Positions 16,319 through 62,659 are shown, counted from the stretch's first letter. The stretch: DNA of 64,000 nucleotides from Macrostomum hystrix (GCA_950097015.1 CATNEN010000014.1:1550001-1614000); one strand, 5' to 3'. Notes: generated by a model from the letters alone, not told the origin. A program made the numbers and translations.

Positions 16319-16748
16319 CTCTTTGGAATACTAATAGTAGTATTCACAACATTTTACAATGGTCCGAAATTGGTCGTCCGTCGGCCGAAAGCGGACGTCT
16401 TTTCGACAAAAGTTATGCGTACAATAAACTAAAAAGCAGAGTCCGCCGGACGATGCTTTTTACACCGGGCAGAGACAAGGGACTACAGTGGAGGTCGATG
16501 GACTTCCCTGTCACATTGCTGACGTCCGGCCGGCCCCAGGCTCGCAACCACAGCTGCCTGGAGTAGAGCGAGCCGTTAAGCGGAGGAGGTGAACCCCGGC
16601 GGTCAAGTTGCGAGAGGTCGGCACCAGTCCGCTACGACGCTTAATCTCTTTTCTTGAGATCAGGGAGTAATGTTGTACTCGTACTTTAACTATCTTCGTT
16701 GTTAGTTGACCGATGCCACTGCTTAAGCAGCCATAGACTGTTCTGACC

Positions 16749-39290: not shown

Positions 39291-39561
39291 CGTCATTTTA
39301 TTAGAGCAAACCGGGGGGTGGTGCAACTATCGATTGGCATATCGACGTACATATCGCAAGCAGATAATTGGTTGGGCCAATGCACGCGGTTCTAGGCACA
39401 GCTAGCCAACATTCCGAGCACACATGTTAGATTATAATATTACACTATCCTATCCAAGATGCTAATCATGATTTTAAGCGGAAAAAGATAACCTCGCATT
39501 AAAGCCATGAAAAAGAAAAATCAGAAAAAATATGCGACCTAGTTTAACTTATTTCAAAACA

Positions 39562-39879
39562 TATCCCATCAACCCAATAGACCATGCTAGCACTTTGATA
39601 TATTATAATATCCATCGACTGAGCTTGATATCCCCTCAACCCAATAGACCATGCTAGCACTTTGATATATTATAATATCCATTGACAAAGCTTGATATCC
39701 CCTCAACCCAATAGACCATGCTAGCACTTTGATATATTATAATATCCATTGACAAAGCTTGATATCCCCTCAACCCAATAGACCATGCTAGCACTTTGAT
39801 ATATTATAATATCCATTGACAAGGCTTGATATCCCCTCAACCCAATAGACCATGCTAGCACTTTGATATATTATAATAT
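39562..39879. repeat. 67-bp tandem repeat, about 5 copies, last one cut by the Gypsy LTR end
   Basis: CAACCCAATAGACC recurs at 39570, 39637, 39704, 39771, 39838. Confidence 0.93.
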
Positions 39880-41045
39880 TGTACTAGGGCTTTACTTCTT
39901 TTTACTTAATTCTACTGAATGCCACCAAAGTTGTTCTTGGGCTATTTTAATAATTCCACTGCTGTTGACTCAACTAATAGATATTTTCAATTGGCGGTCC
40001 TTAAATGGGCCGTTTTAACTTCTCAAATGGTAGCGTTTATATATATGCACGAGCGGTAACTAGGCAACTGTACACGTTTCCAGTCAATTAGGCGTCCCCG
40101 AGATTAGAGTTTAGCAGTTTCCCTTCTGTAATATTCTTAGTATAATTTCTGAGTATGAGTCTGATTATATCTCTCACTGCTATCTCTTCTTAAAATGAAT
40201 AACACAATGCAATACCTTCGGAAATTTGCGTTTTAACACACTTAAAAACTCTTTTTACACACTAAAACTTCTTCAATTTCAACTCTTTACACACTTCAAA
40301 TTATCTCACTAGTAGTAGGTATTGGGGGTATAGGACACTCCTGTTTTTTTAAATTAGTATTCATTTTTTCAAAGGGCCCCTCGAGACCGAAAAAATAGAA
40401 TTTTCTATAAAAAATGAACACTACTAATAACAAATATATCGGATTATGGCACACTCCTGTTTTTTTTTAAATTAGTGTTTATTTTTTCAAAGGGCCCCTC
40501 GAGACCGAAAAAATAGAATTTTCTATAAAAAATGAACACTACTAAAAACAAATATATCGGATTATGGCACACTCCTGTTTTTTAAAATTAGTATTCATTT
40601 TTTCGAAGGGCCCCTCGAGACCGAAAAAATAGAATTTTCTATAAAAAATGAACACTACTAAAAACAAAACACTCGGGTTATGGCACACTCCTGTTTTTTT
40701 TAAATTAGTATTCATTTTTTCGAAGGGCCCCTCGAGACCGAAAAAATAGAATTTTCTATAAAAAATATATACTACTAAAAACAAAACACTCGGGTTATGG
40801 CACACTCCAATTTTTTAAAAAAGGGATTTTGAAAACGTCGTTTTCCACCCCAAAAAATAGTTTTTAACAATTTTTCCTAAGCCCACAGCTCCGCTGCGGG
40901 CCCAGGAGAAATTGTTAAAAATATTTTTGGAATTGAAAATAACTGTTTCAAAATCGGAATACCCCAATATCCACTACTAAGGAAAATGGCTTCGCGCTTC
41001 CTGCGGGCCCAGTATATAAAAATTGTAAAAAAAATTCTCTAAAAA

Positions 41046-43165
41046 ATGGCGACGAACCGAACCTTTCTAGGGTCTGGTCTATCTGGACTGTCAAAAATAA
41101 ATATTGATGTACCAGAACAAAACCCTAAATATTCGTATAGAATATTAGAAGTAAATAAAACTGAAAAAAGGAATTCAAAAATTTCAAGCAGGAATATAAA
41201 CGGGAATATAGAATAAAAGTATTAAAAATATAATTACCGCCATTTAAGACAATCCTCAATAAGATGATACATAAGGCAGCTACTATTAATGGAAAATATT
41301 ATAAAAGTGCGCACATACAATTTGAACAATTTGAATTTGATAATTCAAGAAATTGTAGATTTAGGTTTACTTCAATAAAAGAAGCTGTAGAGGATATTAG
41401 TAATAAAATGGAAATGATTTTTCAAAGCAACGGTAGCACAAACATAACTGATATATTGTTTAGATTTTATGTAGTATTGGATCCAAATGGTAAAGGTAAA
41501 CACGCGGACCTGTTTGTGTCAGCACAAAAAAATCTATAATAACAATAAATAATGAAGATTCAATATGCATGGCAAGAGCTATAGTAACAGCTATCGTAAA
41601 TAACAAGCGATGTATTGATTTATCAGAGAATGAGGCAACTTATATTAAAAAAGGCTGAAAATAACAAAAAGAGTATGCAATAATATTACACAAGTCGGCC
41701 AAAGTAGAAATAAAAGAAGAAGGAAATAATTTAACAGATTTACAAAAATTTGAAGATTATTTACAAATACGCATTTTACAAAGAACTCCAAAACAAGTAT
41801 AGCACTAAAAAAATTCGATCCCTATGATGCGTTTTATGGGGGCCGAACAGAACCGATAAAATTATATAAAAACAATTTTACAGGAGGATATGTTGATGTT
41901 GTTTCATTATATCCCTGGGTACAATCAAATTGTGAATATCCAGTAGGACACCCTATAAAAATCATAAAACCTAAGAAATACGATCCTAATTGGTTTGGAT
42001 TAATTAAATGTAAAATATTACCTCCAAGATATTTATATCATCCTGTTTTACCAGTCAAGACTCATAAATTATTATTCGGTTTATGCAGAACATGTATGGA
42101 GGGGCAAAGTAAAACATTTTGCAAACATTCAGAGGAAGAAAGATGCCTTATAGGTGTGTGGGCTACACCGGAAATAAAGAAAGCACTAGAGAAGGGTTAT
42201 GTAATTAGAGAAATATATGAAGTAGAACATTTTGAAGAAACATCAACAAAGTTATTTACAAATTATGTTAATACATTAAAAAAAATGATGCATCGGGATG
42301 TCCGTGTAAAACTGATTGTAGCAAAATTTATTGCCCCAAACTACAAAAATACATTGAAGACAGCAAAAAAATTGATAACATTGATTTAGATCCAAAAAAG
42401 ATTAGGCTAAATGCAGGTTTGCGTTTTATTGCCAAAATATGCTTAAATAGCTTATGGGGGCATTTTGGCATGAAGGAAGTATATACAGAATTAGAATATG
42501 TCAATACAACTGAAAGACAATGCAATATAATATTTAATAAACAATATGAAGATGTTTCTCAAATAGAATTAGGAAAAAATTACAGATTAATGGAATACAA
42601 ATCTAATTTAGTGTATAAAAACCCACATCCTAAAACAAATATTTATATAGCATTATTTACAACGGTACATGCCCATTTAAAATTATATTCATATTTAGAA
42701 GTATTAGATCGAAGAGTTTTATATATGGATACAGATAGTGTTATTTATGAAGACGATGGCTCTGATGAAGTTTCTAAAATTAAATCACAAATAAGAAACT
42801 TATTTGGAGACTTAACAAATGAATTAGGAAATGATCATATTGTAGAATTTATAGCACCGGCCCCAAAAGATTATGGATATAGAAAAAGTAATGGAGAAAT
42901 TGTATTAAAAAATAAAGGTATAAGGATGATCGCAGAAGCAGAGGAAAAAATAGACATGTCATTAAAAACCGCACTGGTTAAAGGAAAAAAAGGGTGTTTT
43001 AATAGAACAAATTAAATTTCTAATAAATAAGGAAACTAGACAAATAGCTGTTGATAACGGTAAAAAGAAATATGGTTTTGGTTTTGATAAACGTTTTGTG
43101 GAGTGGGAAAATGAAAATACAATAAACACTTTTCCCATAGGATATTATGATAAAAATATTTAATT
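41046..43165 (+). pseudogene. polB: pPolB of Maverick B, fragmented and lacking the exonuclease region
   Basis: KSIITINNEDSICMARAIV; YDAFYGGRTE; DVVSLYP...YPVGHP; KICLNSLWGHFG; YMDTDS; APKDY; FDKR...FPIGY; no Exo I-III motifs seen. Confidence 0.92.
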
Positions 43166-43168
43166 AAA

Positions 43169-43594
43169 ATGACAAAGAAAAAATCAAGAAATGAAAGATT
43201 AAGAAAAGAACTATATAGAATTAATCATTATACAGAACTTAATAAATATTCTTTAAATTTAAAAGTCCAACCGGTCGAAAACATGTTTCCTATTATTTTA
43301 AAAAGGCTTCAAGATTATAATAAATATGATAAAGAAACATTTGATAAATGGTATGAACAACAAAAAAGATTCTTTGTAATTTTTCATGATGAGAAAAATA
43401 GAAAAAATAAATATGTAAATCCTGATTGGGAAGATGAAGATCCTGATTGGTTTACAGTTAGGTTTTGTTCTAATTGCGGCTTATATTTTAAAACTGAATG
43501 GGGTCAAGAAGATACAAATATACCCTTATGCCATAGAAGCCAATTTCCGGGTGAAGAAGGTAAACAAGGATGTTTTGGAAAGAAATATTGCTGA
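43169..43594 (+). CDS. Maverick hypothetical protein with a CxxC motif
   Basis: Intact 141-aa ORF; FCSNCG. Confidence 0.5.
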   Translation: MTKKKSRNERLRKELYRINHYTELNKYSLNLKVQPVENMFPIILKRLQDYNKYDKETFDKWYEQQKRFFVIFHDEKNRKNKYVNPDWEDEDPDWFTVRFCSNCGLYFKTEWGQEDTNIPLCHRSQFPGEEGKQGCFGKKYC

Positions 43595-43598
43595 TCCT

Positions 43599-43824
43599 CT
43601 TTCGGTACCTTTTTTCGGTACCTTTTTTCGGTACTTTCGGTACCTTTTTACGGTACTTTCGGTACCTTTTTTACGGTACTTTCGATACCTTTCGATACCT
43701 TTCAATACCTTTCGATACCTTTTTACGGTACTTTCGATACCTTTCTTATGGTACTTTCGATACCTTTCTTACGGTACTTTCGATACCTTTCTTAAGGTAC
43801 TTTCGATACCTTTTGATCCCTTTT
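43599..43824. repeat. Imperfect array of TTTCGGTACCT/TTTCGATACCT units
   Basis: Read directly; intergenic, upstream of the HTH ORF. Confidence 0.9.
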
Positions 43825-43854
43825 GAGCTTGTGTCTAAATTTTTTATTTAAAAA

Positions 43855-44391
43855 ATGGATTTATTGTCAGAAATCGAAACAGCTGAAAGATTGCAAAATC
43901 TTCAACTTGATGGAAATAAAATTAGCAATTCCTTTAAAATTTTACAACATGTTAAATTTATGAAGATAAAAGCTGAAAGACCAGATTTAACACAAAACCA
44001 AATATGTAAAACTATTGGAACATCTTCCTCAACAATGAAAAGACTTAGAAAATATTTAGCAATTTCTTCACCTTATAGATATAATGTACCGCTTCGTACG
44101 TACTCAATAGCAAATCCAGAAGATAGAGTAAAATGCGATCATTCCCTTCCGGATGGAACCACATGTGAATTTATTGCAAAGAACAAAGTGGGTTTAATGG
44201 CTCATGAAAGATCAAAACATCTAACCGCCTCGCCGCAGGCACCGCAGGCGCCGCAGGCGCAGACACAACCTCAATCAATTATGCGACAAGGAAGAAAGGC
44301 GGAGCCGCTTCAAGGAAGAACAAGAAAAAAATCTTGTACGGATGATGTTACAGAAGCTGATATACAAAGAACTATAAAAAATATGGTTTAA
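43855..44391 (+). CDS. Putative HTH plus C2H2-like DNA-binding protein
   Basis: LTQNQICKTIGTSSSTMKRL (HTH-like); CDH...CEFIAKNKVGLMAHERSKH. Confidence 0.6.
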   Translation: MDLLSEIETAERLQNLQLDGNKISNSFKILQHVKFMKIKAERPDLTQNQICKTIGTSSSTMKRLRKYLAISSPYRYNVPLRTYSIANPEDRVKCDHSLPDGTTCEFIAKNKVGLMAHERSKHLTASPQAPQAPQAQTQPQSIMRQGRKAEPLQGRTRKKSCTDDVTEADIQRTIKNMV

Positions 44392-44392
44392 A

Positions 44393-44812
44393 ATGACAGA
44401 ATTTTTGGAACTTGTAAAACAGGATAAAGAACTTTTAAAAGAAATAGCTATAGAATCAAATGAATTTAATAAAATGAATTTAGCAAATAAGGCAGGAGCG
44501 GGTGAGAAATTATTTGTACAAAATAAGCAATTATTTGCTGCGGTAGGATATATGGCCGATGAAATGAGAGACATGGAGGCAGAAAATACAGCTCTAAATG
44601 ATAAATTAAAAGAAGTTGGAAGCTATGATGAAAAAGAAGTAAATATGAAAATTAAAATAAATAGAAACAACCTTAAACAAATAGATGAAAATATATTAAA
44701 ACGGTTAGAAAAAAGAGTGGCAAATACTGCACGTTTAATAAACTCTGGGGCTACAGAACCAAATAAAAAGAATAATTATAATACAATTATATATAAAACT
44801 ACACCAAAATAA
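44393..44812 (+). CDS. Maverick hypothetical coiled-coil protein
   Basis: Intact 139-aa ORF, charged and helical composition. Confidence 0.5.
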   Translation: MTEFLELVKQDKELLKEIAIESNEFNKMNLANKAGAGEKLFVQNKQLFAAVGYMADEMRDMEAENTALNDKLKEVGSYDEKEVNMKIKINRNNLKQIDENILKRLEKRVANTARLINSGATEPNKKNNYNTIIYKTTPK

Positions 44813-44908
44813 AATTTTAAACATTTGTAAAGATTTATTTAAAATAATAATCATGTCATCTAATTGATTAAAATATGTTGTAATTATCATTTTTTACTAT
44901 TTTAAATA

Positions 44909-45346
44909 ATGGATTTTAAAGAGTTTACTAAAATCTTTGGAACAGATACAACAACAAATTTTGACTTATATAGATGGGCAAAACACTTAAAACTAAAACC
45001 CTTTTTCTATGTAATGAGAGATGAAATACAAGCTCTGGAGCTTGCCGGAAAACCCTCTTACATAATGACAAATATTCATACAACCAAACAAAGAGGAATT
45101 CATCACTCGGCAATTTATTATGACCCCATTAAAAAAATAACATATTGGTTTGACTCATATGCTCTTCCACCATTAGAAGAAGTATTAAAAAAATTTAAAC
45201 ACACAGATCTTTATTATGGGGATGAAAAAGAACAAAGACAAAACATTTTTCTTAACCAAAAATTTTGTGGCCAAATGGGTTTATTCTTTTTATATAGAAT
45301 TTCTAAAGGAGATAGTTATTTGAAGGCTTTAACCCACATATCATAG
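44909..45346 (+). CDS. Adenain-like cysteine protease
   Basis: YVMRDE; QRGIHH (His); WFDSY (Asp); QKFCG (Cys). Confidence 0.88.
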   Translation: MDFKEFTKIFGTDTTTNFDLYRWAKHLKLKPFFYVMRDEIQALELAGKPSYIMTNIHTTKQRGIHHSAIYYDPIKKITYWFDSYALPPLEEVLKKFKHTDLYYGDEKEQRQNIFLNQKFCGQMGLFFLYRISKGDSYLKALTHIS

Positions 45347-45365
45347 ATGTCTCTTCGAGAATAAT

Positions 45366-46117
45366 TCACTGTGGTGCAGAAGGCCCCACACTAGAATGTT
45401 GTAAATTTAGGTTGTAGTTATTATTTTGTAATCCTAGTCTAGCTCTGATTAAATTTTCATTATATTCATTTTTTAATTTTTTCTTAATATTTTTAGATAG
45501 AGTACTTTGTTTTAGAATTTCACTGACATATTTTTCAGGCTCTTCAGCAACGGGTTCGGCGCCATCGCCAACAACCTGGCTACGCACAGGATTTTGAATG
45601 CTGTCTATCAATTTGCAATACTCTACATACATTAAAGTGGCTTCTTCAACTTCTTCAAAAGTAATTTTATTATCTTCATAAACTTTCTGTGAATAAATAT
45701 ACATTTTATTTGAATAATCTCTAGCCAATTCTTTTAGTTTTGTATACCTTACTTTTTTCTTTTTATAAAACAGCATACTTGCAGAAAAGATTGAAATAGT
45801 TTTAATCACTTCAAAACCACTCAAACTTGCAGCGGCAATTCCTAAAACTAAAGGATTTAATGTAACAACGGTTCCTACGATTCCCACACTTGCTATTCCG
45901 GCTGTATAAAGAGATCCTAAACCTATATTAATTGCGTTTAATATTCGAATTTTTTTGAAAACTTTTTTACCTTTTTTGGAAAAATCTCTAGATCTTTTTT
46001 AATACATTCTATGTCTCCACTAATTTTACCTTTTCTCATATAATAAAGTTTTTCTTCTGCAGTGGGCTCTGCCAAGACGGAAATCTCCGGATAAAGTTTT
46101 GGCAAAGAATCAGACAT
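45366..46117 (-). pseudogene. Conserved Maverick membrane-associated ORF, one frameshift near 45970
   Basis: KLYPEI...PTAE start; hydrophobic core GIVGTVVTLNPLVLGIAAASL; DNKITFEE. Confidence 0.6.
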
Positions 46118-46120
46118 TTT

Positions 46121-47260
46121 TTAAGAAATTAATTTCAGCACAGGAAAAAATTGAACATACGTAATAAAAACACGGTCAGAACCCGGAGTAGCAGAAAGAA
46201 CCTTTAGTCTATATTGTTTATATTCTGATATAGTTTCTGGTAAATAAAAATGCTTTAACATCTTTCCAACATATCCGGCATTTTCTGTAGAATAAATTTT
46301 ATCTTCTGCTGCTACTCTGCAGCCATAAAGTTCAAAAGCTTTAATCTGATTAGTATTTTCAGGACGAGTAATACTATGACTCATCATACTAAACTTCCAT
46401 ATTTTTATTTCTTCAGGAAAACTGAAAATAAATTGAAAAGATGTAGACACAGTTGTAACAAAATGGCTAAAATTAGTTCCAAACATATTCCATTTTAAAG
46501 AAAAATCATTAACTGTGCCTGTGGGACAGAATATATCAAATCCTAATGAAGTATATTTTGAAATCGTTTCATAATCTGGAATATAACCTGTAAGAGATTT
46601 TACTCCAACCTCTTTAGAGATAATTATTTCTAATTTTCTAACTTTTGGATGTGTGTCAATAGGTGTATAACGGTTCACAGTTGTTTTAAAAATAATTTTA
46701 CAATATTTACTATTCAGAATTGCATCGGGTTCTAAGCGGTCACCCCAAGCCTGTATATCAGAATCTGGTGGTGCATCATCATAGATGTCTCTTCGAGAAT
46801 GACTAATTTCTATTTTCCAAGTAGGAAGATCTTCTCCAATAATATTGATTCTTTCTATTATTTTATTAGATTTAATTATTATGTAATGTGAACCCATTTC
46901 AGTTGGTTCCCAAAATGTCTCTGGATTATTATCTATCATTTTAAAACTATTTTCAGTATTTGAAGAACATCTAATTTCCTCTATGCTCTGCATAACGTAG
47001 TACATAGTTTTCAATTTGTGCTCGGTACGGGTTTGCGCGGCACGCGCAGCCACGAGAGTGGACCGCATCTCAGACACCGAGTTTTTCAATTCATTCACAC
47101 CTGCATCTACTTCCGTTTTATTGTAGGTTTCACTACGTGGGTATACCTCATCTTTTTTATAATATCTTTTGTCAGCTTGAGAAAGAGAAAATGCATTTAT
47201 TTGGGCTGATCCTGCAAAATTCATAGTACAAAATCTATCCGGTGTGTTTTCTAACGCCAT
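46121..47260 (-). CDS. Putative virion fiber or receptor-binding protein
   Basis: YNKTEVD fiber-type motif and coiled coil, then discoidin/galactose-binding-like segments (MIDNNPETFWEP). Confidence 0.5.
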   Translation of the reverse strand: MALENTPDRFCTMNFAGSAQINAFSLSQADKRYYKKDEVYPRSETYNKTEVDAGVNELKNSVSEMRSTLVAARAAQTRTEHKLKTMYYVMQSIEEIRCSSNTENSFKMIDNNPETFWEPTEMGSHYIIIKSNKIIERINIIGEDLPTWKIEISHSRRDIYDDAPPDSDIQAWGDRLEPDAILNSKYCKIIFKTTVNRYTPIDTHPKVRKLEIIISKEVGVKSLTGYIPDYETISKYTSLGFDIFCPTGTVNDFSLKWNMFGTNFSHFVTTVSTSFQFIFSFPEEIKIWKFSMMSHSITRPENTNQIKAFELYGCRVAAEDKIYSTENAGYVGKMLKHFYLPETISEYKQYRLKVLSATPGSDRVFITYVQFFPVLKLIS

Positions 47261-47286
47261 GTTTCGTCAATTTTAATATGAAAAAA

Positions 47287-48087
47287 TTAATTCTGCTGAA
47301 CTTGAATACTTAAAAATATTTCTTCACCACCAAAATCATAAAGAACTCCAGATTCATCTTCAATACTAAAATTTAATTGACTGATTTGATTATTTCGCAA
47401 AGGATAATAAACAGGATCATTAACTATAATAACAATCTTTTTTCCCATAGTAACAGAATATGCGGGAAATGAAAACAATATCTGCTTTGACGTCATTTTT
47501 CCATTTTCGTCACTTGAATACCCACCTTCAATTTCTAAAGCTCGAATAAAAATAACACTCTTTCCACCATTAATTTTAGCATGATTAGGTGCACGCATAC
47601 CGTGATATTTTTCAGAATTAAATCCGAGAAGGTGTCTAAAATTATTAGGATTGCTTTCATCATTAAAATCTACTATTACATTAGGATTTAAATTAAGTTC
47701 TACCTTTCCTGTTGCAAAATGGGGCGTAAAAATATTTTGGCTAAGAGAATCCTCAACTTTATATAATGAGTCTCCAGCTCGGCCAGTTTGTAGATTAATT
47801 TCTTTAGATAAACTTTCTAATTCCCAAGAACCAGGAGGGATTTTTAAAGTTTTATATGTTGTTCCATTATCCATAGAATATCTAAAATTATTATTTGCTG
47901 CCGTTATATTTTTAATTGAATCATATACGGCAAACTTTATCAAAGCCATTTCATATTTCAATTCGGGGTTTAAATCTATTGGTGTTGGAAAAGTTACTCT
48001 AATTGGATTTTCTTTCACACAAATATTGAATGTTGTTTTAAATTTATTTGAAATTCTATTTATTAGTTTTTCTAATTTTTCTTCCAT
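47287..48087 (-). CDS. Minor capsid (penton) protein
   Basis: VTFPTPIDL...YEMAL; IPPGSWE; VYYPL...ISQLNFSIEDESG. Confidence 0.85.
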   Translation of the reverse strand: MEEKLEKLINRISNKFKTTFNICVKENPIRVTFPTPIDLNPELKYEMALIKFAVYDSIKNITAANNNFRYSMDNGTTYKTLKIPPGSWELESLSKEINLQTGRAGDSLYKVEDSLSQNIFTPHFATGKVELNLNPNVIVDFNDESNPNNFRHLLGFNSEKYHGMRAPNHAKINGGKSVIFIRALEIEGGYSSDENGKMTSKQILFSFPAYSVTMGKKIVIIVNDPVYYPLRNNQISQLNFSIEDESGVLYDFGGEEIFLSIQVQQN

Positions 48088-48098
48088 TTATATCATTT

Positions 48099-49718
48099 TT
48101 ATATTCCTGTATGGCCGTTTGCTTTTGCCACTAATAAAGTCCATAAGCGGGCTGCGAAAGCACGATCGCTAGCAGCACCTACGGCGCCTGCGGCGTGCTT
48201 TGCCTGTCGTAGACGTCGTAGACGTCGTAGACGTCGTAGACGTCGTAGACGTCGTAGACCTTCGCCTCCAGCTTCGTCACCTCCAGCTTCGTTGTCTTCG
48301 GATTGTCTTAATAATCTAGAAGCTTGTTTGTAATTTCCTGTTACTTGAGGATTAGTTTTTTGTCCGGGGATTTCTTTTAATATTTTTAGATATGCTTCTA
48401 GTGATTCTTTACTAAATTTATTAAATTCATTTCCAGTTTCTCTAACTTTCTTATATGATAGTAACTCTTCTACTTCTTTTGTTAATGTAAATGTTTTATC
48501 TCTTATTGTTAGTTTTCCATCAATCAATGTAATAGGGACAGTACCAAGAAAGAAACTATCATTGACTTTTCGTAAACGAATACTTATTGGAGGAGTTTCT
48601 GAATCTTTATATTCTTGAATCACCTTCAACATTCTTTCCAAGTCATCATTTATTTTTGAACTTTTTATTTCTTGCTTAACCTCTTCTAATTTTTTAGTAA
48701 TTGGTGCTTGTTTTTTAGCAGCTTCGTCAAATATTCCTAATTGTTGTAAAGTATATGAGGATCTTTTATCATTATACTCATCTCTTGTTTTTGACAAATT
48801 TTCTAAATCTTCTATGTATTTTTTCGTGTTCAAAGGTAGGTCTGCAGTCATCACTGACATTTTAATATTAGAAAAATCACCACTTTCATCTACATAAAAG
48901 TAATTAGGAAAAACATTATTTGCTTTAACATATTTTGTTTTTATTCTTGTTATAAATATACTACCATACTCTATTTCCCAGGCATCTTTACAGGCTTTAG
49001 CAAATTCATTTTTACTACATAGAACTGAAAATTTACTATAAAGTTTTGGAATATCGTCATTGTTTTGTATAAATATAATAAAGGATGTCGTATTTCCTCT
49101 AATTATATTTCTATTTAATTCTATAAAAGATTGAGATAAGTAAAAAATTGGACCTATTTTTCTTCCTCTGGTAAACAAAGATTTTTGAAATTCTTGATCT
49201 TTATCTGTAATTTTATCGTCTATTATTATTAGTGTATTTTCCAAATCCTTGATAGGTGGGGTTGAAGATATCAAAACATTGAAAGGCGGATTCAAGTGCT
49301 GCTGGAGCAGTTTAGACTCTTCTAGAAATCTTTCTACTAAAACTTTATACTTGTTTTTTTTATATGATCTGTATAAAAAATTTATTTGTTGAGGTTCAAT
49401 ACCTTTTGCAAACCCATGTTTCAGAAATTGATATTCCAAATCATTTTGAGTTATTTCTGGTATTAAACAAAAAATTTGTTTTACCTCTGGATGTAGTTCG
49501 TCCAAACGAGAAATGAAATCTACTTGTGTGAGTAAATTAAAAAGTAAATATGTCTTTCCAGAATTTGTGCTTCCTACAATACAACAAAGATTTGGGTATG
49601 GAAAAATTTCTGAAAATTTTAGAGAATCTGAATCAAACATTTTTGGAGAATCATCATAGATGTCTCTTCGAGAATCATCATAGATGTCTCTTCGATAATC
49701 TAATTGCAAAGCTGTCAT
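48099..49718 (-). CDS. A32-like (FtsK-HerA) packaging ATPase with a long C-terminal extension
   Basis: Walker A GSTNSGKT; Walker B IIIDD; TRGRK...YLSQS. Confidence 0.92.
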   Translation of the reverse strand: MTALQLDYRRDIYDDSRRDIYDDSPKMFDSDSLKFSEIFPYPNLCCIVGSTNSGKTYLLFNLLTQVDFISRLDELHPEVKQIFCLIPEITQNDLEYQFLKHGFAKGIEPQQINFLYRSYKKNKYKVLVERFLEESKLLQQHLNPPFNVLISSTPPIKDLENTLIIIDDKITDKDQEFQKSLFTRGRKIGPIFYLSQSFIELNRNIIRGNTTSFIIFIQNNDDIPKLYSKFSVLCSKNEFAKACKDAWEIEYGSIFITRIKTKYVKANNVFPNYFYVDESGDFSNIKMSVMTADLPLNTKKYIEDLENLSKTRDEYNDKRSSYTLQQLGIFDEAAKKQAPITKKLEEVKQEIKSSKINDDLERMLKVIQEYKDSETPPISIRLRKVNDSFFLGTVPITLIDGKLTIRDKTFTLTKEVEELLSYKKVRETGNEFNKFSKESLEAYLKILKEIPGQKTNPQVTGNYKQASRLLRQSEDNEAGGDEAGGEGLRRLRRLRRLRRLRRLRQAKHAAGAVGAASDRAFAARLWTLLVAKANGHTGI

Positions 49719-49741
49719 TTTATTAATATTATTTTCTGGGT

Positions 49742-51109
49742 CTACTCGACTCTTACCATTCTATTTTCTTGCACTTTAATTATACTTTTAGCCCTTTCAA
49801 GAATTACAGCATATGCAACAAGGGCGTTATTAGTTGATTTAGTAACATGAAGGTTAACAATGGCCCCTGTTTGTACTAATTCATCTTGAGCTGTAAGATC
49901 AAAGCAGAAAATTGAATAATGATCTTTCCAATCTAATTTACTTAGTGAAGGTATTGTATTCATTTCATAGCATGTTTTTTCGTACATATCATATGCAGAC
50001 TCTACGTTTTGTTCTACTGGTCTAATTTTTATAGGATTTAATGGATATTGTGTTTGATTTAATGAAAGAGAAATCTCTTGTATTTCTACTGCTTGACCTG
50101 CAGGAGTGGCTCTATATGAATAATATTTTAAATTGTTAGATTGAAAGCTTGCATTTCCACTACTTTTAAAAACTACAAAAACATAAAGAGGCATACTTCT
50201 CAGACAAGCCATCTGCCAAGTATAATTTTGTGGCGTGATTGTTAAAGGCCCGAGTGTTAATCTTTCAGGATAATTTACTGTTATGTCACCACCATCCATC
50301 AAGTCTCTGAGAATCTTTGTTTCTATCGCTGAAGAAAGTGTTATTGCTGGAACCCAAATTTCAAAACTTTCAATTATTAGTTTTGCATTTGTATCTGCGG
50401 CTCCTAAAAATATTTCTCTATCATTTTGTGCTCTATCCCAGTCAAACTTATAAGAAATTCCTTTTGTTACCTTTCCCCAATCTTCCCCAATCTAAAAATC
50501 CAATTAGTGGAGATAGTGCTAATTTAACATAACCCCCTCTTTTTGGGGCTGCTGTTGTGTTGTTATAATTTTCAAACCTTTTTAAGTTTCCTGTGTTTAT
50601 ATATTTTTGTTTGCTCTATCTGCTAAAGCTCTTGCGCCTGTTTTTACTGCATCAGCATCTGCGCCTGCGGCAATAGTTATATTTGAAACTACATTACCAT
50701 CCCCCGTATCTGGAATCCATCCATAAGTTTCTCTTACTTCATCCTCAAGTTTTGAGTATAATATAGTTTTTAATATTGTGTCTGCTTCTCCTGGATTATT
50801 GTATGTTTTTTGCATTCCTCCTATTGTTGCAGTTACTCGTAAAAATAATCTCATAGGCCAGTTATGTTCAAGAGTTATATTGGTGTTTAAATCTGTATTG
50901 TCTTCTTTTGTTATTGAATATTTAATCATTCCAAAGGCTTGTGACATTAAAATATATGAATCGGTTGAATTAATTTCATGAACAATTGTACCTCCGTTAA
51001 GATTATTTGCAGTTCCAGTTGTTGGAGAAATTTTTATATAATCTTTTTTCTTTCTAAAGAAATTGTATTTATCGTTGGAATCTCTAATATTCAAAATGTT
51101 ATCGTCCAT
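49742..51109 (-). pseudogene. Major capsid protein, frameshifted
   Basis: ORFs 50597-51109 and 49742-50302; ITLEHNWP, PLYVFVVF, YSIFCFDLT. Confidence 0.85.
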
Positions 51110-51143
51110 TTTTAGGAATTTAAATTACTTGTGTGGCCGCAGG

Positions 51144-51614
51144 CTATTTCATAGGTCTTAGGATCAATCCTCCACCTTCAGCTTGAGGAGTAATTTTAAA
51201 GATCTTACTAATTACAAATATAAATGCTTCTGGATTTTTTTCTGCATATTTAGAAATTTTTTCTTCAGCGTATTGGGCAGCATCTTTAATTATGCCAGAG
51301 CCCTTTGCTATGCCGCTACCGCGTATTGTGTTCACACCGCTACCGCGGATAGCTTTAACTTTTTCTTCTTCAATTTTTTCTAAATTATCTTGGTGTTTCT
51401 TTGTATTTACTGTTTCTGCTATTTTTGCTTCTCCTGCGGCAACTCCTCCGGTTGCACCAGCAATTCCAGCAATTAAAGGAATTAATGTTAATAGTGGTAG
51501 GATGCCGCCTTCTTTTTCCTTTTTTATTTTTTTTATTTTCTTTTTAGAAAGATAATATCTTACCCCTTTATATTTAAAATGCATTGGAGTTTCTTTTTTT
51601 ATATATTTATGCAA
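51144..51614 (-). CDS. Maverick core protein with Gly-Gly protease-site-like motifs
   Basis: EGGILPLL; IRGSG repeated; homolog at 6223-6679. Confidence 0.7.
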   Translation of the reverse strand: MHKYIKKETPMHFKYKGVRYYLSKKKIKKIKKEKEGGILPLLTLIPLIAGIAGATGGVAAGEAKIAETVNTKKHQDNLEKIEEEKVKAIRGSGVNTIRGSGIAKGSGIIKDAAQYAEEKISKYAEKNPEAFIFVISKIFKITPQAEGGGLILRPMK

Positions 51615-51797
51615 GCTTTTTTCTAGAGCTTTATGAGTTTTGCTGTGAGGTTCTTCACTTGTGCCGATGCCTGTACCTGCAGCAACTCCGTTGCCGCTAC
51701 GCGGGTTTGGATTCTCAGCAGTAGCTGCCGTAGGCTGACCTTCGGTAACTGCCGACTTCGCGGCTTGTTGAGCGGCCAGTTTAATTTCATTTTCTTC

Positions 51798-52136
51798 TTA
51801 TAATTTATTTGCCGCTAAATTTTCTCTTCGAATCACTTTTAATTTGTTATATTCTTCAGCGGCTTTATTTGCTTCTGATGCTGCTTTTTTAGCGTCAAAA
51901 ACATTTTTTACTGCTAATCCAAGTTGTCCTGTCGCTTGCGCGGCTGAAACTATTTTTGGGCCATAATTCGTTAATGCAGATAGTGCAGAATCAAAAATCC
52001 CTTCTCCTGCAGCACTTGTGCCTTCTCCTGCTGTCGCTGCGGCGGCTTTCGGTCCGACGTACCCACCACTGCTCATACTTATTTCTCCACGACATTTCAT
52101 TCTATTTATATATTTTCCATTTGCGTTAAAAGCCAT
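51798..52136 (-). CDS. Maverick core (pVII-like) protein
   Basis: GEGIFD motif, Ala/Lys-rich. Confidence 0.6.
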   Translation of the reverse strand: MAFNANGKYINRMKCRGEISMSSGGYVGPKAAAATAGEGTSAAGEGIFDSALSALTNYGPKIVSAAQATGQLGLAVKNVFDAKKAASEANKAAEEYNKLKVIRRENLAANKL

Positions 52137-52151
52137 TTTAATGAATTTTTT

Positions 52152-53597
52152 TCACGCATATAAAAGCTGTTCTTTATAAAAACTTCCTATAATTTCTTCA
52201 CCATCTTCGTCTTCTAAAATATATGTTATTGGTTTTGTTTCTAATACCTTTTTCACTATAAACACTTCAGATATTTTCCAATAACCTTTTCTTCCTTTTT
52301 CAAATTTATCCTTATATTTATAAATATGAACTCTATCTCCCACATTAAACTTCTTGTCTCCTGACTTTTCGGCTACGCCACCTGAAGTATCATTCTCGAA
52401 GAGACATCTATGATCATTGCTGGGGTATTCGGAGATCTTGCTCTGCAGGCTTTGCCTGTCGAAGAGCACACCGAAGGAGACTTTTCGAGGGTCTTTAGAA
52501 GCTTCAGTGGGTGTACAGCCTAATGCAGAATGTACTGTGTTGTTATACTCATCTACAGTAGGTTGTAAGATTTTTAGCCATTTCTGATTTCCTTGTAAGT
52601 CAAATTTAAACCAGAGTTTATTCGTCAAAGTTCTGTTAAATCTTTCAATCATAGCATTCTTAGACTCTCCATAAATTGAATACATTCTGTTAATGTAAAC
52701 ACCATTTGAGTCTTTCTTTCTTACATCATCTTTTGAATAAGTATACAATTTGTACATGTGTTGGTTGTAGAATTCTTTTCCTTCGTCAACACATAAGCGT
52801 TCTGATTTTCTACCTCCTCCGGACGGCGAAGCCGGCGAGGCCGCGGAGTCATAGATTTTTTCAAATGCTTGGGCCACTTCTTCTCCCTTTTTTGACTTTA
52901 AAGGAATCGCCCAAGCAAAACGAGTAAAGCCGTCCAGAATATATTTATGACCACGTTCTGGAGGCATAACAATTAAATCCGCATGCCAAACTTCGTCTTT
53001 ATAGTGGTGCACAAATTTTCTAAACACTTTTGGTTTACGATATGGGGTATGCTTTTTTATTGCCTCTTCTAAGGAGAGACCTTGTCCATAGTGAAAGAGG
53101 CAGCTAATACAGGAGTTGGGATTGTGTGTTTTATTACCCGTAAGCCCTAGGCCAAATTTAACCTTCGATTGTATAACTCTTTTCACAAGCTGACGTGTTA
53201 GTCGCTCTTTTATGGTCAAGTCTTCAGCTGGAATTGCGTCTAGCTCTTGTAACATCTGTTCGTCGGGAATGTGTTTTTTGGAAAGAGCGTCTTCGGGGGT
53301 TTGTGAAGAATCTTCCGCATCTCTATACCTTTTATCGTGATTATATGCTGTCCAGTCTATAGGATTTATAGGAAGACTGTCTACTCGTGGTCGATCTGTA
53401 AAAGAATTTAATCTCAGCGTTAAATTTGTTCCTGGCCCTGCAAAGGAATATCCAGGAATGTGCATTTCTCCCTTATACCGTCCGGGGGTGAAATGAAGCT
53501 TGTGAGAAAAGGAAGTTAGTGCGGATTGTAAATCCAAGCTGCTACCTAAAGTCATTCTCGACGAGACATCTATGATGATACCGGACTGAAAAGCCAT
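52152..53597 (-). CDS. Retroviral-type integrase with an N-terminal parvovirus-VP1u-like phospholipase A2 domain
   Basis: PGYSFAGPGT and AYNHDKRY (PLA2); WHADL, CVDEGKEF, IERFNRTL (DDE); FNVGDRV...YILED C-terminus; first ATG at 53597 (track start is a GTG at 53618). Confidence 0.92.
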   Translation of the reverse strand: MAFQSGIIIDVSSRMTLGSSLDLQSALTSFSHKLHFTPGRYKGEMHIPGYSFAGPGTNLTLRLNSFTDRPRVDSLPINPIDWTAYNHDKRYRDAEDSSQTPEDALSKKHIPDEQMLQELDAIPAEDLTIKERLTRQLVKRVIQSKVKFGLGLTGNKTHNPNSCISCLFHYGQGLSLEEAIKKHTPYRKPKVFRKFVHHYKDEVWHADLIVMPPERGHKYILDGFTRFAWAIPLKSKKGEEVAQAFEKIYDSAASPASPSGGGRKSERLCVDEGKEFYNQHMYKLYTYSKDDVRKKDSNGVYINRMYSIYGESKNAMIERFNRTLTNKLWFKFDLQGNQKWLKILQPTVDEYNNTVHSALGCTPTEASKDPRKVSFGVLFDRQSLQSKISEYPSNDHRCLFENDTSGGVAEKSGDKKFNVGDRVHIYKYKDKFEKGRKGYWKISEVFIVKKVLETKPITYILEDEDGEEIIGSFYKEQLLYA

Positions 53598-53800
53598 TTT
53601 AAAGATTTTATTTTGCACGAGGAGCTGATCTGATTGCAGCAGAGCTAACAGCGCAGCTGATTGGTCGTCAGAATTCCGTCAGTTTTCTGTCAAGATTTAG
53701 TCAAAAATTATAAAAATTTTAAAATTCTGACAGCGACAGAAAACTGACGTCCAATAGGAAGGGGGCTAGAATATCATCATAGATGTCTCTTCGAGAATGA
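53552..53800. promoter_or_regulatory. Putative bidirectional promoter bounded by an inverted 29-bp motif pair
   Basis: Divergent genes; opposed CCAAT boxes (53660, 53751); TTATAAAA; inner 15-bp inverted repeat 53677-53691 / 53735-53749. Confidence 0.5.
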
Positions 53801-53822
53801 GCATATATACAACACCCACGGA

Positions 53823-54302
53823 GTGGCACCTCCGGTGATCCCCAATATGCTATACTTTAACAACTCTGTGACCATCTTTAAGCACAGAATGACGGGACGC
53901 CCTACTCTGAGAGCAAGGCACTTAGCGCATCATGTGTCTGTAGCCGCTCAGCTGCGCGTATTTAGAACTCAATTTCTAAGGACATCATTTGCGCGAGAAG
54001 CTACTGTGGATGTGCTCTTAAATAGATGCAGAGTCAACTTTGAATTCCTTGAGCAAGACATACAGCTATTCAAGATAGCAAAAAAGTTGATAACGAAAGA
54101 GCGCGCGGTAGCCAACACTGCAGCACAAATCGAAGAGGATGAGTTTGTGCTACAGGCTGCAAACCAAATACCGCTAGATCTGCCGCCACCATACATTGAG
54201 CCGCAACCGGCTCAGCAACAGGTTCAGCAACAGGTTCAGCAACCGGCTCAGCAACAGGTTCAGCAACCGGCTCAGGAAATGGATCAGGAACCCGCCCAGT
54301 AA
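53823..54302 (+). CDS. Maverick hypothetical protein with a Gln/Pro repeat tail
   Basis: 159-aa ORF with QQVQ/QPAQ repeats; start codon uncertain. Confidence 0.5.
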   Translation: MAPPVIPNMLYFNNSVTIFKHRMTGRPTLRARHLAHHVSVAAQLRVFRTQFLRTSFAREATVDVLLNRCRVNFEFLEQDIQLFKIAKKLITKERAVANTAAQIEEDEFVLQAANQIPLDLPPPYIEPQPAQQQVQQQVQQPAQQQVQQPAQEMDQEPAQ

Positions 54303-55808
54303 GTAAGTTACCTTTAACTCTTTCCTTTATGTTCACATATTAAATTTGCATCGAATCATTCTGTAAAAATAGTAAACTTATTTTAGACTTAGAGTGCAAC
54401 AGAGACCACCATGGAGACTCTGAGATCTGCGGAGAACTAACCATCCCACTAGAGACCGTGAATGTTGGACAGACAATTTTGCAAACTGCTATGCAATAAA
54501 AGAAGAACAAATGTCTGTTGAAAATATATGTGTACACGACTTCTATCTTTGTGATCAATTTCCACTTTGTTTTATTAAAAATTGTATACCAGCAACTTCT
54601 TGTCGGAGTCTTCAGTTTTATTTACTTCTAATATTCTATACGAATATTTAGGGTTTTGTTCTGGTACATCAATATTTATTTTTGACAGTCCAGATAGACC
54701 AGACCCTAGAAAGGTTCGGTTCGTCGCCATTTTTTAGAGAATTTTTTTTACAATTTTTATATACTGGGCCCGCAGGAAGCGCGAAGCCATTTTCCTTAGT
54801 AGTGGATATTGGGGTATTCCGATTTTGAAACAGTTATTTTCAATTCCAAAAATATTTTTAACAATTTCTCCTGGGCCCGCAGCGGAGCTGTGGGCTTAGG
54901 AAAAATTGTTAAAAACTATTTTTTGGGGTGGAAAACGGCGTTTTCAAAATACCTTTTTTAAAAAATTGGAGTGTGCCATAACCCGAGTGTTTTGTTTTTA
55001 GTAGTATATATTTTTTATAGAAAATTCTATTTTTTCGGTCTCGAGGGGCCCTTTGAAAAAATGAATACTAATTAAAAAAAAACAGGAGTGTGCCATAACC
55101 CGAGTGTTTTGTTTTTAGTAGTGTTCATTTTTTATAGAAAATTCTATTTTTTCGGTCTCGAGGGGCCCTTCGAAAAAATGAATACTAATTTAAAAAAACA
55201 GGAGTGTGCCATAATCCGATATATTTGTTTTTAGTAGTGTTCATTTTTTATAGAAAATTCTATTTTTTCGGTCTCGAGGGGCCCTTTGAAAAAATGAATA
55301 CTAATTTTAAAAAACAGGAGTGTCCTATACCCCCAATACCTACTACTCTCACTTTAAACTCACTCTTTAAACTCTTGAAAACACCTTCCTTAGAACACTT
55401 GTCTTTAACTTCAACTTCTTACAAGAAAACTTCGGAGACACTTTAGACTCTTTAACACTCTCATACGAACTGAAACCAACGCTTCAAGAGGAGTGGGTTT
55501 GTTTGCCCTTTTTATTTTTCCTGGTCAAAACTCGCGGCTATTTATACAGAGCAAATTGACATTTTGTTAAAACGATAATATTTTACAAAGTATTATTTAC
55601 AGGATACAGTATTAAAACAAAATTATTTACATAAGCATTACTTTCAATACGGTACAAAGATAAACAAAAAATTATTTTTTGGCGCATTTTTGATTTTATT
55701 TATTTTTACAATTTTTATAATAGAAAGACCGTATTTATAAAGTGGCTAACTGTTACAACTTCCCTCTCTAAAGAAAAATTTGAATAAAACAAATGAGTGA
55801 ACATTTTT

Positions 55809-56485
55809 CTAAAAATTACAGTTGTGCGGTAAGTCCTTGAAATATGGGAAATTCACTTGATTAAACAACCAACGGAATTCGATAGTTACTAGCCGATGCT
55901 GAAAGGTCCTGTTGTCGGTCTGCCGCAGGCGCTGAAGCTCCCCTCCAATTGCGGCGTAGATGGTTACCACTTCCGGCTGTGACATCAGTTCCTTAAGCGC
56001 GACCGCCGCCCACACTTGCGCTCGCTGTGGCAAGGCCTCGTCTAACCTTAGGTAGGCGACCCTTGTGAGGTAGCGGAGTATGGAAAAACGGAGCCGTTCC
56101 GCGTGTTCTCCGTATTTTACCATCAGTTCCTGATAAGTCAGCTCCGGTGATGACGGTGGCGGAGGCGGCGGCGGTGGTGGCGGTGTTCCAGCAGAGGGTT
56201 GACCACGCTTCTTGTCAGCCACCGGTGTGATGAAGATCTGGCACGTACTTTTGGTGCCCGGCGTGTTTTTGGCGTGCTTCTCAATTGGCATCGCTGCCTG
56301 GGCCGCCATCAAGTTTGCTCTTCTATTGTGTAGGTCCAATTGCCGTACCTTAGTGGGTGAAGAGGTCCTCGGCCGTTTCCCTGCCACTAGCTGAGGCCTC
56401 GTTGGCTGTCGCTCCGGTGCTGATATTTCGGCGTCACTACTTCTGGTTCCAGCGACCGCAGTAGTTCGTCGAGTTCATTATCCAT
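55809..56485 (-). pseudogene. Extra ORF between Gypsy pol and the 3' LTR (non-env-like), frameshift near codon 33
   Basis: ATG at 56485 MDNELDELL...; KRPR; polyproline; no signal peptide or TM segment. Confidence 0.5.
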
Positions 56486-56859
56486 CTCTGCGCAAATTAG
56501 CTTTTCACAATTACTGCTCTTGGGTGCTGACCCTCCCTTCATTATATAGGCTTTGGGGGTTGGCCAAAAGCGAAATTATCATGGAAACTGTTGTCAAGTT
56601 CTATCTCGATTGCTATTGGCTGGCGAGGGAGGTGGGGTTAGGCAGACTCACGGCTGTGTGGCGTGGGCCTGAGCATAGTTGAGCATAGTGAGCATAGCAA
56701 AATTTTTCTTTTCTTCATAAAACTTTTAATATTCAACTTTAATTTTTAAGAAAGATGAATACATTAAGACGAATAAATTGGTTTTTAAATTTTTCAGATA
56801 TCTTATGCGGTTCTCATTCTGTTGACTGGCGGCACTGAAAAGGGCCGTTTAACTATTTT

Positions 56860-58603
56860 CTACTGTCCATTATGCATTCTCTCGTAGTTAATCGCATTAT
56901 TACGTGGTCTAAGATTATATCTTCCTTCAGGAACTTGATCCTCTTCGTACTGCTCAGCTTCTTGTTCGATTGGTTCATCTTCTTCAGCTTCTTCTTGAAT
57001 TTCTTCCTCAATTTCTTCTTCTATTATACTTTCGATTTCTTCTTCTTCAAATTCTTCAATATCTTCGGGTTCTCTTATTCTCCACTGTAATCTTCTTTCA
57101 TCTTCTTCCTCTTCTTCCTTTTCTTCTTCTTCTTCCTCTATCACAATTTCCTCGGTTTTCTTCTCCTTGACTTTTGTCTTCTGCTTATCAACTTCCCTCT
57201 CTTAATTTTTGGCTCTGTCTTTTCTTCTTGTTGTTCTTCTGGAATTTCTCTCTCAGAGTTCGGGACTGGTGTGAGGTTGTTTCGATGAACCAACATTTTT
57301 TCACCTGTTCTTGTTCCTTCAATTTCCTTCTGTACTCGGAAAACTGTGTCACTTATTTGCGCTAGTACTCGATATGCTGCGCGCTTTTTCCGATGGAATT
57401 TGTTGCTTTCATCTACATGCAATTGTGGGTTGTTGATTAGTGCTAAGCATCCCACTGGGACAATTTTAGGTTGTTTATTCTCAGCAGAGATTTCTTCTCG
57501 TTTGTGTCGAATGTTCTCCAATTTCTTCTGAACTATTCCTCTGACTTCTTCGAGTCGCTTCGCATGATCAGCTACATAGCTCGGATAATCACTGTACTGC
57601 TTCGGCTTCTTAATAATGTTACCAATGGGCAAATCTGCTTCTCGGCCAAACAGTAAGTAGTGTGGAGTGAATCCAGTAGTCTGGTTCACACTTGTTCTAA
57701 CAGCTACTAATGCGGCTGGGATTAGCAGATCCCAATCAGAATGATCTTTCTCCACTAGACAGGTAATAATTGACTTGATTTGTCTATTAAATCTCTCGAC
57801 AAGTCCGTTGCTTTGTGCATGATAAGGCGTTGTGCAGGTATGTTTGATTCCATACAGAACACAGAATGCCTGAAACTGCCTACTCACAAATGTCTTACCA
57901 TTATCGGTATGCATCCACTGACACTGGCCATATTCACTAAAGATTCTCTCTTGGATCAGCTTGATGACGGTGTCGGATTTTTTATTCCGAATCGGGAAAG
58001 CAAACGGGAACTTAGTGGTACTGTCCACAATAGTGAGTACATAGCGGTGTCCTCGTTTACTTTCTTTGGAGATTGGGCCGATAATGTCAATGTGCAGCCG
58101 GTGAAATGGTTCGCAAATTGGGAACGTCTGTACCGGCGCTTGCACTTTACTGCCGACCTTACTCTCTAAACACGGAATACATTCCGAAATATACCGCTCA
58201 ATAGAGGTCACCAATCCTGGTTTCCAAAACCTCTCACGAACACGCTGAATGGTTTTATCACGCCCTAGATGACCTGCGAGAGGACTGTCGTGCAATTCTT
58301 TTAGCACATCCCTCTCAATAGCCTCTGGCAAAACCACTTTCCTTTTTCCGTCTTCTTCAATCACCAACATTTCATCTTCGATTCTCATGTGTTCATAAAA
58401 CTTCGCCATTTTCCTCAATTCTTTACTCGCGTTCTCAGGTACTATTGGCTCTCGGACATCTTGTTCCTTCCAATCTATCAGTGTCCTTATAGAGGGATCT
58501 TCATGTTGAGCTATTGTCAACTGTTCCTTCTTTAACGGGACATTGAGATAGTCGGTCAGAAGTTTCCGACACACGGCCTCATTATGTAATTCTTCCTCAA
58601 AAT
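56860..58603 (-). pseudogene. pol: Gypsy integrase with a frameshifted acidic tail
   Basis: HDSPLAGH...CIPC; IDIIGP; TDNG; GLVERFNR; tail ends RYNLRPR. Confidence 0.93.
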
Positions 58604-58619
58604 AGTCTCTGGCATCTTC

Positions 58620-62643: not shown

Positions 62644-62659
62644 AGTCTCTGGCATCTTC

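Follow-up and report, generated by a model that had tools for sequence, protein, structure and literature searches.

A short DNA motif dispersed in seven copies through a single Maverick element of Macrostomum hystrix: a possible copied cassette and putative cis-acting site

A 17-bp dyad repeat is scattered through the genomes of Cluster O mycobacteriophages, with roughly one third of its copies in genes, and has been read as a set of sites for dimeric DNA-binding proteins; the stoperators of Cluster A phages are treated in the same study (PMC4351075). The homologous regions (hr) of baculoviruses contain 24-bp imperfect palindromes and serve as enhancers and origins (PMC4535591), acting through a viral transactivator (PMC4535591; PMC2834656). 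Rickettsia palindromic elements (RPEs), which measure ~150 bp, occur in frame in unrelated protein-coding genes without destroying them (PMC10969869). The subject of this report is a motif of 23-28 nt that is present in seven copies within one Maverick/adintovirus-like element, here called element B, in a 64,000-nt stretch of the Macrostomum hystrix assembly (GCA_950097015.1, CATNEN010000014.1:1550001-1614000; hereafter the window). The motif is tentatively read as a lineage-specific DNA cassette that was multiplied inside the element and has been retained as a set of dispersed cis-acting, putative binding sites for a dimeric protein. To our knowledge, almost nothing is known about gene regulation, genome recognition or maintenance in Mavericks, Polintons and adintoviruses. 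A limited search of the literature on these elements turned up no dispersed internal motif of this kind, in agreement with the original prediction, made from the sequence alone, that this analysis follows up.

Like the mycobacteriophage repeats, which are interpreted as dimer sites acting other than at promoters (PMC4351075), the motif forms near-identical short sites across a compact viral genome, some in coding regions and several near gene starts. The phage repeats, however, are 13-17-bp sites of bacterial viruses that number more than 30 copies and are found in all cluster members, and the stoperators are asymmetric and aligned with transcription. In contrast, the motif has 23-28 bp and seven copies of mixed orientation in a eukaryotic element, is absent from relatives and was demonstrably added by insertion. 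The baculovirus hr offer a parallel in that an invertebrate DNA virus has, at more than one locus, imperfect palindromes close in length to the motif, which work regardless of orientation and are in part arranged in tandem. The hr palindromes (24-30 bp) lie inside 60-70-bp units that are clustered and non-coding, and a single unit was inactive in the cited study (PMC4535591), whereas the copies in element B are mostly single (with one tandem site), several fall in open reading frames (ORFs), the dyad is weak and there is no longer clustered non-coding unit.

As with RPEs and intragenic MITEs (miniature transposable elements with inverted repeats), repeated DNA stands in frame in unrelated genes that are kept open. 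RPE families are spread genome-wide over a bacterial chromosome, whereas the motif, with its 24-28 nt, lacks a target duplication and is restricted to a single virus-like element of 15 kb. The Cluster O repeats and the baculovirus hr are nearest in operation, and the RPEs are nearest in mode of arrival. The motif is not filed as a member of any of these families because their defining features fail: its orientation is not aligned with transcription, it forms no longer clustered repeat, it has no target duplication, it is small, and it has not spread into host DNA in the window. It is rated here as a variant among the dispersed cis repeats of viral genomes, with a non-negligible chance of being an ultra-short self-copying insert of a new kind.

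The window was searched with the 28-nt form (46775-46802 and 53773-53800; up to three mismatches), which gave six sites, and with a 17-nt core, which gave seven (Table 1); the expectation from shuffled sequence is 0.00 matches for the 28-mer and 0.03 for the core. All seven predicted copies were recovered by these searches at their predicted coordinates and strands. When up to nine mismatches were allowed, the seven copies fell at 0-4 mismatches and none appeared at 5-9, with shuffles giving 0-4 matches at such looseness; because the window holds no copy with 5-9 mismatches, the set is sharply bimodal. The same scan found no copy in the remaining 49 kb of the window, including the transposable-element (TE)-rich DNA around element B, as had been predicted, and the two 11-nt halves of the motif never stand alone in element B. 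Five sequence forms are represented among the seven copies: two copies are identical and the other five each have point changes. Several copies form inverted pairs of 26-30 nt with 93-97% complementarity; for example, copies 6 and 7 pair over 29 nt (97%) around 191 nt.

Copies 2-4 are antisense and copies 5-6 sense relative to their own genes, and four of the seven lie within ~200 nt of the ATPase or integrase starts. The layout bears on the possibility of a packaging or genome-recognition signal read by the FtsK/A32-type ATPase or a capsid component, which would suit an element that encodes a packaging ATPase, carries several copies, all in its right-hand two-thirds, and has a tandem pair directly upstream of the ATPase body. 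In the adenovirus lineage, packaging repeats are clustered near one genome end, whereas these copies are spread over 8.5 kb, the nearest ~1.5 kb from a terminus, in mixed orientation (++++--+) and with no equivalent in relatives. A packaging role is improbable on this evidence.

The repeated unit consists of an invariant 23-nt core that extends to 28 nt in most copies, with semi-conserved ends (5' ATC and 3' GA). Ten mismatches to the 28-nt form occur overall, eight of them in the outer five positions and two in the inner 23 (2 of 161 bases). Identity among copies aligned with 36-nt flanks is confined to the motif. Local alignments of 60-nt flanks did not exceed a null drawn from the element once ~90 comparisons were allowed for, and blastn found no similarity between copies beyond 30 nt, the shared sequence stopping at 23-30 nt. 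These two results, flank alignments at the null level and no blastn match above 30 nt, rule out a longer repeat unit around the core. The tandem pair (49650-49701) has a period of 24.

The motif can be drawn as a 10-7-10 imperfect palindrome in which seven of ten arm pairs match (p ~0.008 in a fixed register) or, alternatively, parsed as two adjacent 4-3-4 mini-palindromes. Its inverted ends (ATCAT...ATGA(T)) reach only 4-5 nt, short of the terminal inverted repeats (TIRs) of MITE- or RPE-like elements. No consistent direct repeat flanks the copies; the near-constant 5' ATCAT and 3' ATGA- flanks are part of the motif or of a preferred target. In accordance with the original description, the motif has TCAT...ATGA ends and a TCTC-TTC-GAGA mini-palindrome, and target duplications are missing. 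The mini-hairpin proposed for the TCTC-TTC-GAGA segment is present as a palindrome, with a stability no greater than that of shuffled sequence: folding of both strands against shuffles gave z-scores of +0.83 to -0.46, that is, no extra stability. Rfam has no match at any motif copy, and a structured-RNA identity is ruled out by this negative together with the shuffle-level folding. A relation to host small RNA, of which the motif would be a target or source on both transcript strands, is quite improbable. Its 24-28 nt correspond to the length range of animal PIWI-interacting RNAs, both orientations occur and the region is dense in TEs; neither an Rfam match nor direct evidence speaks for such a relation, however, and a silencing target would be selected against rather than multiplied.

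The imperfect palindrome and the inverted pairs also suit sites for a site-specific recombinase, at which inverted pairs would flip segments such as the 191-nt region upstream of the integrase between copies 6 and 7. The protease gene, whose strand is reversed relative to an integrated relative (L001) and which has copy 1 at that junction, points the same way. However, no tyrosine or serine recombinase domain was found in the ORFs scanned, the rve integrase acts otherwise, and the other side of the protease gene is without the motif. Recombinase sites are therefore given little probability.

Translation of the ORFs recovered all the peptides quoted in the original prediction. RRDIYDD occurs once in ORF 46121-47260 and twice near the start of ORF 48099-49718, IIIDVSSRM and DHRCLFEND both fall in ORF 52152-53618, and the TAG that ends ORF 44909-45346 lies in copy 1, so that the protease stop codon is indeed inside the motif. 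Because the motif is used in three frames, on two strands, as one stop codon and at one non-coding site, a peptide unit is ruled out: the unit is defined at the DNA level, not at the protein level. An RRDIYDD module selected at the protein level might be argued from the three of five translated copies that share this frame (three to five copies lie inside ORFs). It is close to refuted by the frame usage, the remaining copies being read in two further frames, spanning a stop codon or lying at a non-coding site, and by nucleotide identity that runs through every codon position, and its probability is very small. The prediction had also claimed a constraint at the DNA or RNA level; the DNA-level unit stands, whereas the constraint does not follow from near-identity, which recent copying explains equally well.

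Comparison with homologous genes bears on how the coding copies arrived. In an alignment of the integrase with 18 homologues (43-68% identity), the protein of element B is, at the site of copy 6, exactly 8 codons longer than that of P0002/L002, the closest relative having an N-terminus; the addition lies between the common MAF start and the LGSSLD block. Copy 5 occupies the middle of a 31-33-residue segment, located before the integrase C-terminal domain, that is absent from all 18 aligned relatives. Three lineage-specific insertions were recognized in the integrase, and two of them contain the motif. A structure model of the integrase (predicted local distance difference test, pLDDT, 50) leaves both motif-encoded segments unstructured (pLDDT ~30), like most of the protein. 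For the ATPase, an exhaustive search returned 253 homologues of ~250 aa, whose alignments begin at about query residues 25-46. The homologue N-termini map to ~residues 20-31 of the element B ORF and the tandem pair occupies residues 8-23; the pair is therefore part of an N-terminal tail or leader without counterpart in relatives. The prediction that two copies are at the ATPase N-terminus thus holds for this tail, and not for the conserved ATPase body, as the ~250-aa relatives lack the tail.

Presence in element B and absence from homologous genes, with the frame kept, was found at both integrase sites and in the ATPase tail. As judged from these alignments, the coding copies in the integrase and the ATPase tail are insertions relative to homologues, with a net addition of 24 nt where it is measurable. 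Copies 1 and 7 are non-coding, and copy 2 lies in the fibre-like ORF 46121-47260, for which homologues were sought and none was detectable. Copies are placed in tolerant positions only, namely N-terminal tails, an inter-domain linker and gaps between genes. The micro-insert mentioned in the original prediction gains real support from the added segments; the choice that the prediction left among operator, packaging signal, recombination signal and insert is not settled by them.

These additions are what a function-free micro-insert would leave, that is, a 24-nt unit that spreads as a by-product of replication or repair, through microhomology-mediated switching of templates, through slippage or by ectopic insertion from a template, and that survives wherever genes are left intact, without benefiting the element. 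The exact addition of 8 codons at one site, the tandem period of 24, the sharp bounds, the lack of degenerate copies and the occurrence of both orientations all fit such an origin, as does the finding that all coding copies stand at positions gapped in relatives. The ATCAT...ATGA(T) ends are short inverted repeats and possible microhomology. Moreover, since 24 is divisible by three and the motif is open in four of its six frames, open ORFs need no special selection. The many other in-frame tandem and GC-rich expansions of element B point to a slippage-prone lineage. In contrast, seven fixations of one 24-nt unit in 15 kb would take either selection or insertion at a very high rate. An enzyme for such a unit is not evident, target duplications are lacking, and the TE-rich DNA of the window around the element is without copies. 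The unit is also far smaller than known non-autonomous mobile elements, the in-frame Rickettsia elements being ~150 bp (PMC10969869). A function-free insert is, on balance, somewhat unlikely, and nearly as likely as the binding-site reading.

The binding site is favoured because seven fixations in 15 kb are easier with selection, four copies lie near the ATPase or integrase starts, and the motif has a partial dyad. Many near-identical copies spread through the element, genes included, are also a feature of operator- or stoperator-type sites. On the binding-site reading, the cassette would have spread by copying between sites of the Maverick lineage prior to integration of the copy seen in the window. 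With each copying event, ~24 nt (8 codons) would be added, and copies would persist only where genes tolerate them (N-terminal tails, the inter-domain linker and intergenic gaps). The double-stranded motif would be a cis site bound by a dimeric protein from either the element or its host, and might act as a dispersed, orientation-independent operator or enhancer, like the mycobacteriophage dyad repeats and stoperators or the baculovirus hr palindromes.

New copies could arise by templated insertion, in which template switching at short ATCAT/ATGAT-type ends takes place during strand-displacement replication. Protein-primed replication in adenovirus-like systems yields long displaced single strands; a nascent end that switches template on such displaced strands would produce insertions in either orientation and tandem duplication. 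The repeat, its sharp bounds, the insertion status of its coding copies and its restriction to one element are established, whereas binding function, binder and copying mechanism are inferred. Seven events after integration are unlikely, and the motif most probably spread in a replicating lineage, because the TIRs differ by ~1% and the flanking host DNA is without a copy.

A bolder claim, which we regard as unlikely although not negligible, is that the motif is a 24-nt cassette that propagates itself. As a repeat unit it would then be the smallest known to colonize protein-coding genes in a virus-like element, doing so in frame and in both orientations, and would be copied by the element's own replication through template switching at its short inverted ends. 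If true, it would represent a new class of ultra-short intragenomic parasite, or raw material for cis-regulatory sites, in eukaryotic DNA viruses.

Comparison beyond element B restricts the motif further. Exact scans for the 23-mer gave no match in IMG/VR, JGI metagenome contigs or GTDB genomes (one per bacterial or archaeal species), and scans of these collections with the 17-mer gave 25 single matches, which are attributed to chance because their flanks are unrelated. The best integrase match is P0001 (62% identity), and an integrase profile search of IMG/VR found no relative. 'Maverick A', a second region of the window that bears polymerase B (a fragment at 8016-8927), is unrelated to element B at the protein level. 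Five integrated relatives with ~40% integrase identity were drawn from ENA assemblies (L001 and L029-L032), and in the gene blocks of four of them no 12-mer recurs at three or more scattered positions. L031 contains a different, GC-rich palindrome in three copies (11758-11774, 16372-16388 and 19195-19211), two of them in intergenic gaps, upstream of the capsid gene and immediately behind the penton gene, respectively; this may represent an independent example of palindrome dispersal in the family. The motif is specific to the lineage of element B, and dispersed repeats are not constant in the family.

That the motif was unknown in all the collections searched would also be expected of an assembly, adapter or barcode artefact, and some sequencing barcodes are 24 long. 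Against an artefact stand the five sequence forms among seven copies, the kept reading frames with one exact 8-codon addition, the confinement to one element, and the lack of matches in bacterial and archaeal genomes, viral contigs and metagenome contigs. Such an origin is very improbable.

Several results weigh against a functional binding site. The dyad is weak, at p ~0.08 across all 16 registers, and orientation follows no rule with respect to transcription, in contrast to that of stoperators. Families of binding sites usually hold degenerate members, of which this set has none, and this fits recent copying equally. Four of the five relatives have no analogous dispersed motif, and the motif is therefore not a family-wide regulatory design. 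Neither a sister copy nor a close relative with retrievable DNA was found, and any conservation beyond recency would be conjectural. The analysis covers a single copy of the element, which is itself defective, with stops in the capsid gene and a polymerase remnant, and present-day function cannot be assumed.

For the binder proposed originally, a helix-turn-helix (HTH)/zinc-finger protein encoded by ORF 43855-44391, Pfam gives an Xre-like HTH match with E = 0.13, which is sub-threshold, no solved structural relative of the ORF was found, and its structure model has a low-confidence pLDDT of 42. With sub-threshold HTH evidence, the protein is only a candidate DNA-binding protein, a further point against a binding site. 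Directly upstream of this ORF lies a tandem array (43600-43826) of about ten 10-13-nt half-units with a 22-23-nt period; it is unrelated to the motif and may be a cis element.

Element B is a cleanly integrated adintovirus-type Maverick. Its TIRs are ~740-855 nt long and 99% identical, both beginning AGTAGTAGG, and its interior has 33% GC, compared with 40-55% in the TE-rich flanks, which are full of retroelement genes. That the host of the motif is a Maverick, as predicted, is confirmed by its TIRs, 6-bp target duplication, protein-primed polymerase remnant, rve integrase and capsid-module homologues; together with a PLA2-like domain, these features liken it to the PLA2-bearing 'Alpha' class of adintovirus-type Mavericks (PMC8502044). 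The capsid module (double-jelly-roll capsid, penton, A32/FtsK-type ATPase and adenain-like protease) is present by homology to syntenic genes of L001. Pfam found no match in the protease-like ORF 44909-45346, whose identity comes only from L001 homology, and an exact-product look-up for the penton ORF returned no record.

The major capsid gene contains five in-frame stops (three TAA and two TAG) and no frameshift relative to L001. An alternative genetic code behind these stops is ruled out, as TAG also ends the protease ORF. In the polymerase, ~300 codons are recognizable, compared with at least 890 aa in relatives, and a tblastn search of element B with the polymerase of a relative gave no match. 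Because the TIRs are 99% identical although the capsid gene contains five stops and only a short remnant of the polymerase is left, the data suggest that the lineage was already defective before insertion and was propagated with the help of other copies.

Other features of the element's genes were also recorded. The PLA2-like domain is otherwise known from parvovirus capsid proteins and has been noted for Alpha-class adintoviruses. The integrase fusion has 1273 homologues, most with PF08398 and PF00665, and the N-terminal fusion of the PLA2-like domain (PF08398) to the integrase shows the same architecture in more than 100 of the 120 homologues listed. The ATPase ORF has 539 aa, compared with ~250 aa in its 253 homologues, and continues in frame into what is a separate gene of L001. 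Nearly all gene starts in 43169-53597 have an A-rich context (...TAAA then ATG), usual for element B and shared by both candidate ATPase ATGs, and gaps between genes measure just 12-27 nt. Compared with L001:16060-16587, the protease-like gene (44909-45346, +) shows the reverse orientation with respect to the capsid block, with copy 1 at the resulting convergent junction.

GC-rich patches (50-58% GC) occur in element B at 48206-48259, 44231-44260, 52824-52843, 54203-54299 and ~20 more places, often as in-frame 9- or 12-nt tandem arrays that encode low-complexity peptides (RRL, PQA and Q-rich repeats); at least one patch (52794-52865) is a lineage-specific insertion in the integrase. Each TIR contains a 36+36-nt hairpin with 81% complementarity (40854-40928 and 54848-54922), for which only sub-threshold matches to microRNA precursors were found (mir-9261, 34 bits against a gathering score of 86). 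Outside element B (1-40000 and 55400-64000), the window is dense in mobile-element genes. These include endonuclease and reverse transcriptase genes of the long interspersed nuclear element type (58668-62633), a Ty3-type integrase (57141-58574) and another reverse transcriptase (11026-12459). Satellite-like arrays are also present in the window, for example at 39561-39879 and 170-460.

Table 1. Motif copies, element B and its genes, with positions counted from the first letter of the window
Feature	Coordinates	Strand	Remarks
Motif copy 1	45337/45340-45362	+	23-nt core intact, outer bases differ; occupies the gap that separates two convergent genes; ORF 44909-45346 takes its TAG stop from it
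Motif copy 2	46775-46802	+	Full 28-nt form; within fibre-like ORF; opposite strand reads HSRRDIYDD
Motif copy 3	49650-49677	+	Unit 1 of tandem pair, period 24; in N-terminal tail/leader of ATPase ORF
Motif copy 4	49674-49701	+	Unit 2 of tandem pair; three mismatches at 3' end
Motif copy 5	52390-52417	-	Centre of ~31-33-codon insertion in linker before integrase C-terminal domain; reads DHRCLFEND
Motif copy 6	53552-53579	-	One mismatch; just after integrase start (MAF...); reads IIIDVSSRM
Motif copy 7	53773-53800	+	Full 28-nt form; outside any ORF; ~175 nt upstream of integrase ATG
Maverick/adintovirus-like element B	40311-55347		15,037 bp; 6-bp target duplication CTCACT at 40305-40310 and 55348-55353
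Left TIR	40311-41165	+	Contains 116-nt tandem sub-repeats; inverted-repeat match 704 nt, 99% complementary
Right TIR	54611-55347	-	
Protein-primed DNA polymerase B remnant	42096-43015	+	PF03175, last quarter of model only; truncated, interrupted
Candidate-binder ORF	43855-44391	+	178 aa; three-helix segment; C-x-C...H-x-H pattern
Protease-like ORF	44909-45346	+	41-42% identity to syntenic L001 ORF
Fibre-like ORF	46121-47260	-	379 aa
Penton-like minor capsid ORF	47287-48087	-	31-33% identity to syntenic ORF of L001
Packaging-ATPase ORF	48099-49718	-	539 aa; ATPase body ~residues 30-260, in-frame fusion to further segment; relative shows Pox_A32 hints
Major capsid protein gene	49742-51109	-	Single-frame match to 432/451 residues of L001 capsid gene (hint of double-jelly-roll-like domain)
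PLA2-like + rve integrase fusion ORF	52152-53618	-	Probable start ATG at 53597; PF08398 E = 1e-7, rve (PF00665) weak

If the motif is a binding site, it would give such an element its first candidate cis-regulatory network and would provide a concrete sequence to seek in expression and small-RNA data. If it is self-spreading, a compact eukaryotic virus genome would be open to in-frame colonization by a 24-nt insert, which would bear on the origin of linkers and tails in viral proteins and on the multiplication of binding sites. Under either reading, this family of elements can be traced by the motif, which serves as a sharp lineage marker.

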